Of a stretch of DNA of 64,000 nt, positions 4,024 through 7,753 are shown piece after piece. The notes beneath the pieces are model-generated. The model was not told the DNA's origin. It saw only the letters and a program-made list of their open reading frames with translations, and did no database searches. Where the stretch lies: contig MCFH01000045.1 of the NCBI GenBank assembly GCA_002104945.1, positions 372,001 to 436,000 on the forward strand, written 5' to 3'. The translations under genes and the position numbers were made by a program. The DNA is from Piromyces finnis finn (lineage: Eukaryota; Fungi; Neocallimastigomycota). The first letter of the stretch is position 1. Every line of letters begins with the position of its first letter.

Positions 4024-7000
4024 CTACATTCTATCTAAAGGTTGAACACCAAGAACTGATAAACCATGATACAAAATTTTTCTAACATAAGAAAACAACA
4101 TTAATCTTGTATTCGCTAATGTCTCCCAATATTGATCATTATTTTCTATTATATCATTACTTTCTAACTCATTATTTCTAGTTCTTTTACGTCCTGTCAT
4201 GGCTTTAATTTCATTTGAAAGATTTGACTTTCCAAGTCCTTTAACACGTAAATTAGAGCTCGCTGAGCTAATACTATGAGAAATATGATTGAGTGCATCT
4301 AAAATAAGGGATGGTTCGATTTTTTGATACACACTTGGATATATATTGTATAAATAATCATCTAGGAACCAAATAAATGGGAAAACCTCTGGTGTTACTC
4401 GTACTAACTCCTCAAAATCAAATATGCTATCAAGTTTATCATTTATATAATTCTTTATTTCTTTTTCAATATTTTCAAAAATATCTGTATTCTTAGAAAA
4501 CAAAGAATCTTCTTGGTTTTGTTTTTTTTCTTCAAAAAGGTTTAAGAATCTTTGTTGTTTTTTATTAAAGTCACAATTTCTTAAAATACTTTTTTTTTTT
4601 TTTATTTGGTTATATGTTTAAAAATATATTTAAAAAGAGTTTTAGATTTTAATCAACTATTTTATTATTTACAATAAATATTTCAGACTATAAAATATCT
4701 TTTATTTACCTGCAAATTTTAGCGTATATATACTGAAGATATAAACCAATATTAGTTTTCTTATTATTGCTAAAATCATCAAAATCATCGAAATCATCAT
4801 TATCATTATTACTAGAAGACATTTCCCATTCATATTTATAATTTTTCATCCTTCTATACTGTAAATTCTGTAAAATAATAGATGAAATACCTGAAATTTC
4901 AATTATTTCATTTACATTTTCTACAGATTTAAATTCTAAAAATAAAATAAAAATTAAATTTTATTTAAATATAAAGTTTATAAAATTATTATTATTATTA
5001 TTATTATTATTATTATTATTATTATTATTATTATTATTATTATTATTATTATTATTATTATTATTATTATTATTATTATTATTATTATTATTATTATTAT
5101 TATTATTATTATTATTATTATTATTATTATTATTATTATTATTATATTATTATTATTATTATTATTATTATTATTATTATTATTATTATTATTATTATTA
5201 TTATTATTATTATTATTATTATTATTATTATTATTATTATTATTATTATTATTATTATTATTATTATTATTATTATTATTATTATTATTACTATTATTAT
5301 TATTACCTTCATTTTTGTTATATTTCTTTTCTTGTAGTTCGTTTTCCATATCTCTGTATTTTTCAATATTACTTTCAATAACTTCACTCATTTCAATTTT
5401 TGAGGCATCAATTAAAAAGTTCAAATCTAAAGGAGTTTTATTTGATGTTAACTTTAAAGAATCTAACATTGATAAATCCCATAAATTGTCTACTTTTCCA
5501 TGAGTAATGATTTCCCATTCAATTTCAACAAATATTTTAATAATTTTGTTATATTTCTTTAATTCTAACACTTCGTCACCAGAAACATGAGATAATTTTT
5601 CATAATTTTTGCAATAATATTGAATCCATTCTAACAAAGCAATTAATTGCATATAATGGTGTTCTTTATTAACATTATTAACAAATATAACTTTGTTAAT
5701 TGGTTTTTGTTGATTAATGTTAAAAACTCTACTAATAATTAAATTCAAATCTAAATATATTTCTGAAATTCTTTCATTCGTAGAGACTTTGTCATCATCA
5801 CTCTAGTAATTTATTTAATAATTATATATAAATAAATTATAAATATTCATTTCATACATAAAACATATTAATAAAGTAATACCTACATTAAGATCTTTTG
5901 TTATATTTTTTAAATATATTCTTCCTTGCTTTATATTTTTAATAATTGGAATGTATTTTTGAGTTTTGTTATTGGAAAAATCAATGCATTCTAAATCAAT
6001 ATAGATATTCTCCATAGATTCTTTTATAAATTGAATAATTTGTTTACCCTTTACTATTAATGAATCATTTTCAGAAGTATTCAGAACTACTGCTTGACCA
6101 TCTTCCTTTTTTAATATTTTTTGTTCGTACATTAACCATAAAATCCAATAAAGAATAAGATTCTCTCTATTTATATTTTTTAAATTAGAATTATTGATGC
6201 TATCGAAGTCTCCAAAAATTGAATCCTTGGAGTGATTGCATGATAATTCATTATAGATTTCTAATGACTTATTATCATCATTATTATTTAATATATTCAA
6301 AAATCTTTTAACACCATTTAAATATCTATTTGATAGAACTGAACGTACTGCTTTTATAATTAGTTTTCTGTCTTCAATTATTTTATTTCTATCTTCTGTG
6401 TTTATTGGTGATTCGTTAAAATTAAAATAACTTTCATTTTCTAAAACATTTTCAATATCATCGATTTCTTTTCTAATATTAGAATTATCTGTTTGCTTTA
6501 GTTTTTCATCAATTATTGTAATCATATGATATATTTCATTAATTATATCTTGTTCATTTTCAGTATTATAATCATTATTTTTTATAATTTTACTTAATTT
6601 GCAATTATTCTTTTCATTCATATATATAAGCTTTGCTACAAGTATTAATTTATCAATATATAAAAAATTTCGGGTTAATAATAATAATTTTATAAAATTA
6701 TTAAACAAGCATAACAAAATTATTCAATATATCAATATAATTTATTAATGTATATTTATTATTATTACCTAAGGTATTACAATCTTCAATGTATCGAATC
6801 ATAAAAATAGAATTAACAAATTCATTTTTATTTGGTTTATTTGTATTGGGTTTCAAGTAATTAATAACATCATTATTAGATAAATACAATTTTGATATAA
6901 AATTTGAAAGTATTAAAGATTTAACATGATTTGACATTAATTCAGTTGCTCTATTAACATTATGGGTTGATGATGAAGATAAAATATTATTTAATTTAAC

Positions 7001-7753
7001 AGGTGACAAATATAATGCAATATTTTTTTCTTTATTGGATTTTTCTGAAGTATTTAATTTCTTAGTATTGACATCTATAATTTTTTTTTGTTCTAACATA
7101 AATTTTTCTGATTTAGATAGTATAAAAGGAATAGTATAAAGTTGTAATTTTAAGAATTCTGCTTTTGATAAAATAAAATTTAAAAAAATTCCAGAAGCAA
7201 TTACTGATTGTATATATTTATTTACAGGAAACTTTATAAAAAAAAAATAAAGTTAAAATTTTTCTGAATAAAAAATATACATTTATTTATAGAAAACCTA
7301 AATTTCATACATATATATTACCTTTTCTTTTAGTTCTTTACACCATTCTTCAAGATTCTTCTCAAATTTAAATATTTTAATATTTGATGTACTTGAAATA
7401 TGATTTAAAGTTATTAGTTTTTGAAAATACCATTGAATTAATTCCTTACTTAAACGAGGCATTAAGATTGATAATTGAGAATCATGTTTTTGTAATTCTT
7501 TTCCATTACTTATTTTTCTTTTCTTATTTCCTTTTGGATTGGATTTTGAAAGTGGTTTTACTCTTTCGATACAATTTTCTACAAATTCGATGATTTTTAT
7601 TTTATCTTTATCATTTATTTCGAAATTTATATTATTCCCATCAATTAATTCATTTTTAACTTTTTCTGTATTAATTCCAATACAACTAAAGAGTGTTGGG
7701 ATAATTATCTCTGTTATTTTTAATGCAATATATCTTTTATATATCCAAGACAT
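4024..7753 (-). CDS. Arginyl-tRNA synthetase-like protein with degenerate catalytic motifs and a C-terminal DALR anticodon-binding domain (DALRD3-like), multi-exon
   Basis: Hand-spliced exons follow ArgRS order. HIGH-equivalent region: ELMSNHVKSLILSNFISKLY...INYL. Then VIFVNNVNKEHHYMQL, LNFLIDASKIEMSEVIESNIEKY, ISGISSIILQNLQYRRMKNYKYEW and IGLYLQYIYAKICSILRN. The C-terminus is RLMLFSYVRKILYHGLSVLGVQPLDRM*. Intron 4936-5306 (GAAG|GTAATA ... TTTTTAG|AA) preserves frame. Confidence 0.75.
4985..5305. repeat. (TTA/AAT)n microsatellite of about 100 units, intronic
   Basis: Near-perfect trinucleotide run with one phase slip near 5145, lying inside the predicted intron 4936-5306. Confidence 0.95.

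Follow-up and report, generated by a model that had tools for sequence, protein, structure and literature searches.

The window, by which we mean the whole 64,000-nucleotide stretch of Piromyces finnis DNA analyzed here, carries on its minus strand, from position 7753 to position 4024, one gene of six exons and 976 codons. Our analysis supports the view that this gene encodes an expressed and selectively maintained protein derived from arginyl-tRNA synthetase (ArgRS) that lacks the class I signatures and is thus a candidate pseudo-enzyme. The explanation that we favor, and judge to be probable, is that of a decayed ArgRS: at least the C-terminal third, and probably the whole of exons 2 to 6, would descend from the synthetase, the ATP-binding signatures would have been lost, and the product is predicted to be a noncatalytic binder of tRNA-Arg. 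The parts of the gene that matter for this argument are the following.

7322..7753, minus strand: exon 1, with the ATG at 7753 and 144 codons; the N-terminal region.
6769..7231, minus strand: exon 2, carrying IASGIFLNF, MSNH (6937-6926) and then the invariant block NHVKSLILSNF.
5887..6635, minus strand: exon 3, of 249 codons and 2 further bases; its C-terminal end is the invariant block FIPIIKNIKQGRIY.
5307..5802, minus strand: exon 4, with VIFVNNVNKEHHYMQL, ITHGKV, KLTSNK (5454-5437) and the invariant helix ASKIEMSEVIESNIEKYRDME.
4936..5306, minus strand: intron 4, phase 1, with GT at 5306-5305 and AG at 4937-4936; the phases match on both sides.
4710..4935, minus strand: exon 5, with ISGISSIILQNLQYRRMKNYKYEW, then an acidic insertion, then NIGLYLQYIYAKIC.
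4024..4588, minus strand: exon 6 and the stop codon; the DALR domain and a long family-specific middle part, ending in LANTRLMLFSYVRKILYHGLSVLGVQPLDRM before the stop.

All introns of the gene begin with GT and end with AG, and their phases are consistent. An in-frame stop codon (7768-7766) lies upstream of the exon 1 ATG, and an mRNA contig spans 7765-7322 across this exon. As the sequence-only reading had proposed, this is a multi-exon gene broken up by introns and a microsatellite: we found six exons, and the TRF program located an (ATT)107 tract (4985-5305) inside intron 4. Spliced mRNA contigs from four runs in three studies matched introns 1 to 3 base for base. The joints between exons 1 and 2 (7231/7322) and between exons 2 and 3 (6769/6635) were present in RNA contigs, and the joint between exons 3 and 4 (5887/5802) was found in four runs from three studies. 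One 3,035-nt contig fits the entire spliced mRNA. Removal of introns 4 and 5 is indicated by two further observations, each of which fits only if both are spliced out: an mRNA contig leaves 856 nt past position 5310, and in run X1 the proportion of sampled words present was 0.80, compared with an exonic fraction of 0.79. The gene is transcribed, and the possibility that it is silent is excluded.

We then compared the gene with its relatives. Six-exon orthologues with the same splice phases are intact in two further anaerobic-fungus species (L001 and L007), giving an unbroken six-exon reading frame in three species, P. finnis included, and a third further species contributed a partial orthologue (L004). 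Whole-gene dN/dS ratios in four pairwise comparisons were 0.22, 0.26, 0.26 and 0.15 (Nei-Gojobori method; dS of about 0.8 to 1.0), which excludes values near 1 and indicates purifying selection. The ratio was lowest in exons 5 and 6 (0.06 to 0.15 and 0.10 to 0.20, respectively), and exon 6 was 72 to 83% identical among four species. Exon 3 is the least conserved part (50 to 53% identity; dN/dS of 0.29 to 0.33), while exon 1, which contains a conserved basic cluster, KKRK (7525-7514), is 58 to 70% identical to its orthologues. Because the gene is expressed, has orthologues in three further species (one partial) and shows dN/dS values of 0.15 to 0.26, it is neither silent nor a pseudogene, and on these grounds, together with its splicing, we also rejected a chance open reading frame. 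No member of the family was found outside the anaerobic gut fungi. An exhaustive phmmer search of 1.84 billion representative sequences with the last open reading frame recovered only a 172-amino-acid fragment from a related fungus and one spurious repeat protein, and two scans of metagenome contigs for relatives found none.

To relate the protein to known synthetases, we used two comparison sets: 86 bacterial ArgRS sequences, gathered by a DNA-pattern scan, and 10 giant-virus loci, eight of which yielded usable ArgRS sequences. A word-index search with the Escherichia coli ArgRS returned Enterobacteria only, and one with a giant-virus ArgRS yielded RARS1-type enzymes of animals, plants and protists and no fungal-type ArgRS, RARS2 or DALRD3. 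ArgRS proteins of about 840 amino acids with a GST domain were considered as the canonical enzyme of the fungus and rejected, since the telomere-like G4T repeats at the end of L142 suggest that they are probably from a ciliate.

The last approximately 260 residues, encoded by exons 5 and 6, are demonstrably ArgRS derived by sequence comparison. Exon 6 matched the Pfam DALR_1 domain (PF05746) and exceeded its cut-off of 22.3 with 30.3 bits (E value of 5e-7; gene positions 4155-4027), the match being restricted to model positions 79-117, which make up the final third of that model. It also matched the C terminus of the NCBIfam argS model (E values of 0.002 to 0.003) and, in hhalign, the 86 bacterial ArgRSs (probability of 73%; E value of 2.9e-5). 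In the PDB, the exon 6 profile matched yeast ArgRS and nothing else; this exon corresponds to residues 575-607 of that enzyme. Searched against the whole PDB, the exon 5 profile likewise retrieved yeast ArgRS (1bs2) alone, at residues 442-480 (E value of 8.5e-4; gene positions 4927-4811). Exon 5 combines the end of the catalytic-domain homology with the start of the anticodon-binding domain, and its score was reached by none of 200 and none of 100 shuffled sequences; against 94 to 120 ArgRS sequences, both exons outscored all shuffles. The DALR-region strings named in the sequence-only reading were all recovered, namely GLYLQY, AKICSIL (rebuilt across intron 5), GLSVLGV and the terminal RM, and the middle part of exon 6 additionally includes GRKRTR (4194-4177). 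The protein carries two basic clusters that resemble nuclear localization signals. The protein closes with DRM where the ArgRS consensus closes with ERM, and this Arg-Met pair is invariant in the family.

The resemblance to the yeast enzyme bears on where the protein came from. It may represent an orphaned organellar synthetase, that is, a mitochondrial-type ArgRS that lost its substrate together with the hydrogenosome genome and was kept in a noncatalytic, tRNA-related role; anaerobic gut fungi have no organellar genome. Among the ArgRS chains of the PDB, the profiles of exons 5 and 6 find yeast alone, and yeast ArgRS scores about twice as high as the 94 E. coli-type and giant-virus enzymes do with the exon 5 profile, and as the 120 animal- and plant-type enzymes do with the exon 5 and exon 6 sequences. 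Evidence for a mitochondrial origin of the yeast cytoplasmic ArgRS has been cited by Igloi and Leisinger (2014; PMC4615739). However, the N terminus is conserved and includes acidic residues, unlike a presequence, and should every fungal ArgRS be of the yeast type, the resemblance would be blind to whether the parent was cytosolic or organellar. We regard an organellar parent as possible, with the balance leaning against it. This account concerns origin and is compatible with the decayed-ArgRS explanation that we favor.

The upstream exons were more difficult to place. When exons 1 to 4 (about 710 residues) were searched singly against Pfam, NCBIfam, the PDB (with profiles and with single sequences) and the ESM Atlas, no significant match was obtained, and exon-by-exon Pfam searches of exons 1 and 2 did not detect the Arg_tRNA_synt_N (Add-1) domain. 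The AlphaFold2 model of exon 1 (pLDDT of 66.8) is mostly helical; neither Foldseek nor VIA-align matched it to the ArgRS N-terminal domain, and it gave generic helical matches alone (Z ≤ 5.5). The only N-domain-like feature is the exon 2 segment IASGIFLNF, which resembles the ArgRS strand IAGPGFIN. In hhalign, exon 2 residues 11-132 were placed on ArgRS residues 89-192, with MSNH under HVGH, at an E value of 0.35, within the range of shuffles; the top-10 mean score of the exon 2 profile, by contrast, exceeded all 60 of 60 column shuffles. Exon 3 scored 21.5 in hhalign, above 40 of 40 shuffles, in an ambiguous alignment, and FIPIIKNIKQGRIY is a possible counterpart of the ArgRS segment P.IVQKSDGGY.Y. 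In exon 4, VIFVNNVNKEHHYMQL falls under the ArgRS segment RiiYVVD..Q..HF and the TTDLAA block (hhalign E value of 0.21, no better than shuffles), and the best HMM domain mapped to ArgRS profile positions 330-372 in all three species, again with scores no better than shuffles. Against the bacterial and giant-virus sets, hhalign and HMMER raised neither exon 2 nor exon 4 above shuffles. The AlphaFold model of exon 4 had a pLDDT of 49 and was unusable, its Foldseek matches being meaningless.

When the exons are taken together, the median best-match positions of exons 2 to 6 lie at 0.24, 0.42, 0.59, 0.77 and 0.98 of ArgRS length and are perfectly collinear, with a narrow spread at the exon 4 value of 0.59. 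The earlier claim that the exons follow ArgRS order is borne out in this sense, although the matches of exons 2 to 4 are not individually significant. Sequence similarity thus weakly indicates an ArgRS ancestry for exons 2 to 4, and a full-length ArgRS derivative is plausible. Of the full-length paralog first proposed, exons 5 and 6 stand firmly and exons 2 to 4 tentatively, while exon 1, with its helical model and no N-domain match, does not follow.

These results also allow us to weigh a domain fusion, in which only the last approximately 260 residues would come from ArgRS and exons 1 to 4 would represent an unrelated protein joined to a DALR module. The blank exon-by-exon searches of every library and the generic matches of the helical exon 1 model are as such a fusion would predict, and the same alternative was raised for DALRD3 by Lentini et al. 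(PMC7237682). In exon 5, however, the homology also covers the end of the catalytic domain, which precedes the DALR domain; exons 2, 3 and 4 have their best matches in ArgRS order and with the expected spacing, exon 2 exceeds its shuffles, and in three species exon 4 falls on one and the same block of ArgRS. We therefore consider a fusion unlikely and prefer descent by decay of an ArgRS.

We next considered the catalytic signatures. None of the 18 exon translations of the window gene and its two full orthologues contained H.GH, a KMSKS-like motif or MS.[RK]. The putative HIGH equivalent reads MSNH in the window gene and MTNH in the orthologues; in this weak alignment the first His and the Gly are replaced in all species, and the last His survives, as does the [KR]-S-x-I-[IL] block after it. 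The putative equivalent of KMSKS/MSTRKG, aligned by eye without statistical support, is KLTSNK or NLTSNK. The sequence-only reading had both signatures eroded or replaced. As far as HIGH is concerned, MSNH is indeed present at 6937-6926 and H.GH occurs nowhere, but the placement of MSNH under HVGH scored like shuffles; as for KMSKS/MSTRKG, the exons of all three species are devoid of such a motif, but the equivalence of KLTSNK was drawn by eye. In exon-by-exon searches, the catalytic-domain model tRNA-synt_1d (PF00750) was not recognized above threshold: exons 2 to 4 were blank, and exon 5 matched only its last 34 positions (316-349 of 349; E value of 0.012; 15 bits, below the cut-off of 23.3). 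Of the three domains expected in a full-length paralog, only DALR_1 was therefore recovered above its cut-off, tRNA-synt_1d falling short and Arg_tRNA_synt_N giving no match.

A DALR domain without recognizable catalytic motifs raises the comparison with DALRD3. In such a scheme, the protein, whether an ancient orthologue or a product of convergence, would recruit a methyltransferase of the Trm140/METTL2 family to particular isoacceptors of tRNA-Arg so that m3C32 is formed on them. The genome is heavy on AGA, which accounts for 22 of the 29 Arg codons in the 976-codon gene, and tRNA-Arg-UCU, which reads AGA, is one of the two mammalian DALRD3 targets. Set against this, the protein, at 976 residues, is nearly twice as long as DALRD3 (543 amino acids), and its sole PDB relative is a fungal-type ArgRS, which points to an origin inside the fungi. 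The architecture follows the same logic as that of DALRD3 (PMC7237682), but DALRD3 homologues have been reported for vertebrates alone, and tRNA-Arg carrying m3C32 is reported to be absent from yeast and to have gone undetected in plants (Lentini et al. 2020, PMC7237682). In our estimation, a factor of this type is quite improbable.

Least credible is a still-active ArgRS with unorthodox motifs, which we consider very improbable: many ArgRSs lack a canonical KMSKS, and the weak alignment retains the final His of HIGH together with the [KR]-S-x-I-[IL] block, but every species reads M-S/T-N-H in place of HIGH, with both the first His and the Gly substituted, and neither Pfam nor NCBIfam recognizes the catalytic domain.

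We thus return to the decayed ArgRS. According to this explanation, an ArgRS ancestor would have lost its ATP-binding signatures, HIGH becoming M-S/T-N-H and the KMSKS/MSTRKG loop becoming LTSNK, and the anticodon-binding (DALR) module, including the C-terminal Arg-Met, would have been kept under the strongest constraint. Since the protein has an ArgRS anticodon-binding tail and no catalytic signatures, its probable role is to bind arginine tRNA, most likely through the anticodon stem-loop, and not to aminoacylate it; it may act as a noncatalytic adaptor, chaperone or sensor for tRNA-Arg. Both the binding and the absence of activity are inferred from sequence. A more elaborate version, in which a redundant organellar ArgRS became a noncatalytic nuclear or cytosolic tRNA-Arg factor of gut fungi, an independent counterpart of DALRD3 possibly tuning the AGA-decoding tRNA that this extremely AT-rich genome relies on, is speculative, and we would give it little weight.

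Among known proteins, the closest comparison is yeast ArgRS (S. cerevisiae YDR341C; PDB 1bs2/1f7u), which shares with the fungal protein the DALR domain, the YLQY.YA.I.SI helix and the terminal RM. Its residues 442-480, just upstream of the DALR domain, are also matched, and weak collinear matches continue through the Rossmann-fold region. In contrast to the yeast enzyme, the gut-fungal protein lacks HIGH and the MSTRKG/KMSKS loop, its catalytic and N-terminal domains are not recognized by profiles, and it is approximately 370 residues longer, with family-specific insertions. The missing motifs and the unrecognizable catalytic domain make tRNA charging very unlikely.

To our knowledge, DALRD3 is the only ArgRS-derived noncatalytic example to have been studied. 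This partner of METTL2 in m3C32 formation on tRNA-Arg-UCU/CCU has a C-terminal DALR domain, no catalytic motif and an unassignable N-terminal part, as does the gut-fungal protein, and both raise the same question of whether they arose from a decayed ArgRS or a domain fusion. The two were compared by architecture and the link is one of analogy, DALRD3 being shorter and regarded as a vertebrate invention, with homologues reported only there, whereas the family of the much longer gut-fungal protein was detected in anaerobic gut fungi alone. The HisRS-like domain of GCN2, a synthetase-derived noncatalytic tRNA binder, is a similar case, in that a full-length synthetase-like module that no longer catalyzes still recognizes tRNA and has been put to use in sensing or targeting. 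It belongs to another synthetase family and is fused to a kinase, whereas no effector domain was detected in the gut-fungal protein.

Synthetase derivatives that are catalytically dead and retain tRNA recognition are a recurring route by which cells target or sense individual tRNAs. If our explanation is correct, early-diverging fungi would supply a second, independently conserved case of a dead ArgRS derivative, meaning that evolution reached this solution on more than one occasion, and the protein would help in the study of tRNA-Arg where the GC content is about 18%, AGA usage is heavy and organellar translation is missing. The gene would also provide a natural test of the choice between decayed duplicate and domain fusion that was left open for DALRD3.

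At 7753..4024 the minus strand carries a single ArgRS-like gene; the genome is about 18% GC. Three-frame reading combined with splice-phase bookkeeping gave six exons totaling 2928 nt (976 codons), and every intron has GT..AG borders.

Exons of the ArgRS-like gene and the neighboring transporter in a related fungus
7753-7322, minus strand, exon 1
7231-6769, minus strand, exon 2
6635-5887, minus strand, exon 3
5802-5307, minus strand, exon 4
4935-4710, minus strand, exon 5
4588-4027, minus strand, exon 6 (stop codon at 4026-4024)
L004:5081-7326, ABC transporter in the related fungus's contigs
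L005:3965-6210, ABC transporter in the related fungus's contigs

An (ATT)107 microsatellite at 4985-5305 (98% matches) lies wholly within intron 4, which accounts for the poly-N/poly-I tail in the mechanically compiled list of ORFs. Introns of L001, an orthologue locus from another anaerobic fungus, also carry trinucleotide microsatellites (e.g., at about 1571-1683 and 2446-2491). Gene order is conserved locally: an ABC transporter lies downstream of the ArgRS-like gene both in the window (1-3000, minus strand) and on contigs of the related fungus.

The stretch occurs in four public runs (three studies) whose RNA label is only guessed, and their contigs are spliced. A 3035-nt contig from run X1 matches 7765-7322, 7231-6769, 6635-5887, and 5802-5310, exactly reproducing introns 1 to 3 of the model (seen as CT..AC on the plus strand), and all four runs contain the junction of intron 3. 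The remaining 856 nt past 5310 agree in length with exons 5 and 6 together with some 62 nt of 3' UTR when introns 4 and 5 are taken out, and not otherwise; from this we infer their removal. Of the sampled words, a share of 0.80 occurred in run X1, against an exonic fraction of 0.79. The initial 30 nt of the X1 contig do not adjoin 7765 on the genome, which could reflect an assembly end or an intron in the 5' UTR.

When the last ORF was compared by phmmer with 1.84 billion representatives, one real relative was recovered, the 172-aa fragment P0001, which together with two further fragments (P0003 and P0004) was located on JGI metagenome contigs; a full-length member of the family was absent from the two large protein collections searched. 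The whole gene is present in L001 and L007, with six open exons and unchanged splice phases, and exons 4 to 6 are present in L004. Amino acid identity between the window and the orthologues is 50 to 83% by exon. Nei-Gojobori dN/dS was 0.22 for window/L001, 0.26 for window/L007, 0.26 for L001/L007, and 0.15 for window/L004 (exons 4 to 6), at a dS of about 0.8 to 1.0 for the four pairs, and constraint was strongest in exons 5 and 6 (0.06 to 0.20). The spliced contigs and the low dN/dS therefore indicate that the gene is expressed and under purifying selection, excluding both an untranscribed locus and one with dN/dS near 1.

By sequence comparison, exons 5 and 6 are demonstrably ArgRS-derived. 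Exon 6 matched Pfam DALR_1 (E 5e-7; 30.3 bits versus a curated cutoff of 22.3), with the match confined to the final 40 model positions, and also the C terminus of the NCBIfam argS models. Exon 5 matched tRNA-synt_1d, the model for the catalytic domain, at its extreme end (positions 316-349 of 349; E 0.012). In PDB, the sole match of a four-species exon 5 profile was yeast ArgRS 1bs2 (residues 442-480; E 8.5e-4), which the exon 6 profile also matched (residues 575-607; E 0.038); E. coli, human, Thermus, and archaeal ArgRS chains all failed E 10 in these searches. Against 94 bacterial and giant-virus ArgRS, the scores of both exons were reached by no shuffle; against 120 animal, plant, and protist ArgRS, the exon 5 score was reached by none and that of exon 6 by 2 of 100. 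Restored across intron 5, NIGLYLQYIYAKIC followed by SILR parallels the ArgRS consensus GNTAPYLQYAYARIRSIFR, and the C-terminal ..LDRM occupies the exact site of the ArgRS terminal ..ERM.

Searched singly, exons 1 to 4 (about 710 residues) had no match in Pfam, NCBIfam, PDB, or the ESM Atlas. In profile-profile alignments of exons 2 and 4 with 86 bacterial ArgRS, exon 2 residues 11-132 aligned to ArgRS 89-192 (E 0.35), placing IASGIFLNF under IAGPGFIN, S-T-H-N under S-S-P-N, MSNH under HVGH, and VKSLILSN under LRSTIIGD, and exon 4 residues 10-93 aligned to 323-398 (E 0.21), placing DL..I..R under TTDLAAIRYR and VIFVNN..HHY under RiiYVVD..Q..HF. Between a quarter and a fifth of column shuffles equaled these scores. 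The mean score of the exon 2 profile over its ten best ArgRS targets exceeded all 60 shuffles, exon 4 from three species hit one common ArgRS block (positions 330-372), and the best-match medians of exons 2 to 6 are collinear and evenly spaced (0.24, 0.42, 0.59, 0.77, and 0.98 of ArgRS length), which together lift the exon 2 to 4 signal above noise. Exon 1 gave no comparable ArgRS signal: AlphaFold modeled it (pLDDT 66.8) as a bundle of helices bearing a disordered, basic loop, and structural matches to this model were only generic. The exon 4 model was of too low quality for use. The sequence-only reading of a full-length ArgRS is partly confirmed: it holds clearly for exons 5 and 6, is suggested by weak collinear matches for exons 2 to 4, and leaves exon 1 outside; full-length ancestry is probable.

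Two basic clusters are kept in all orthologues, KKRK (7525-7514), inside the sole disordered loop of the exon 1 model, and GRKRTR (4194-4177), in an insertion specific to this family within the DALR domain; both resemble nuclear localization signals or RNA-contact patches.

A direct scan of 18 exon translations from three species found no H-x-G-H, KMSKS-like, or MS-x-[RK] motif. The weakly aligned positions read M-S/T-N-H and K/N-L-T-S-N-K and are conserved among species, so that the earlier account of eroded HIGH and KMSKS motifs is accurate as description, its placement of these residues under the ArgRS motifs being plausible rather than proven. The catalytic core is no longer recognizable, yet it stays constrained (dN/dS about 0.14 to 0.45). 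Expression, purifying selection, and the missing motifs uphold the designation pseudo-enzyme.

Full-text searches of the literature turned up no account of a fungal ArgRS-like pseudo-enzyme, and none of synthetase paralogues from Neocallimastigomycota. Noncatalytic synthetase paralogues are already known as a kind; what is new here is a lineage-restricted variant. ArgRS of about 840 aa with N-terminal GST domains (P0141, P0149, P0154, P0159, and P0215) occur on gene-sized contigs of ~3 kb from rumen samples. We do not take these to be fungal genes; they are probably rumen-ciliate nanochromosomes, since contig L142 starts with G4T-type telomere-like repeats (L142:1-40).

The hydrogenosome of anaerobic gut fungi has no genome, and a mitochondrial-type ArgRS would hence have lost its substrate. 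Because the family resembles yeast-type ArgRS only, and yeast-type ArgRS is of mitochondrial origin by evidence cited in Igloi & Leisinger 2014 (PMC4615739), the gene may be a repurposed descendant of a mitochondrial-type ArgRS, an origin we hold to be rather unlikely.

DALRD3, to which the protein had been likened, has its DALR domain at the C terminus and an N-terminal part that cannot be assigned; it is reported from vertebrates only, and m3C32 on tRNA-Arg is reported absent in yeast and plants (Lentini et al. 2020, PMC7237682). The likeness is one of architecture, a C-terminal DALR domain behind an N-terminal part without family assignment; a DALRD3-like m3C-factor role of the Piromyces protein is unproven. 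Given an eroded but constrained core, an anticodon-binding module that is the best-conserved part, and a retained terminal Arg-Met, the family fits a protein that would still recognize tRNA-Arg without charging it.
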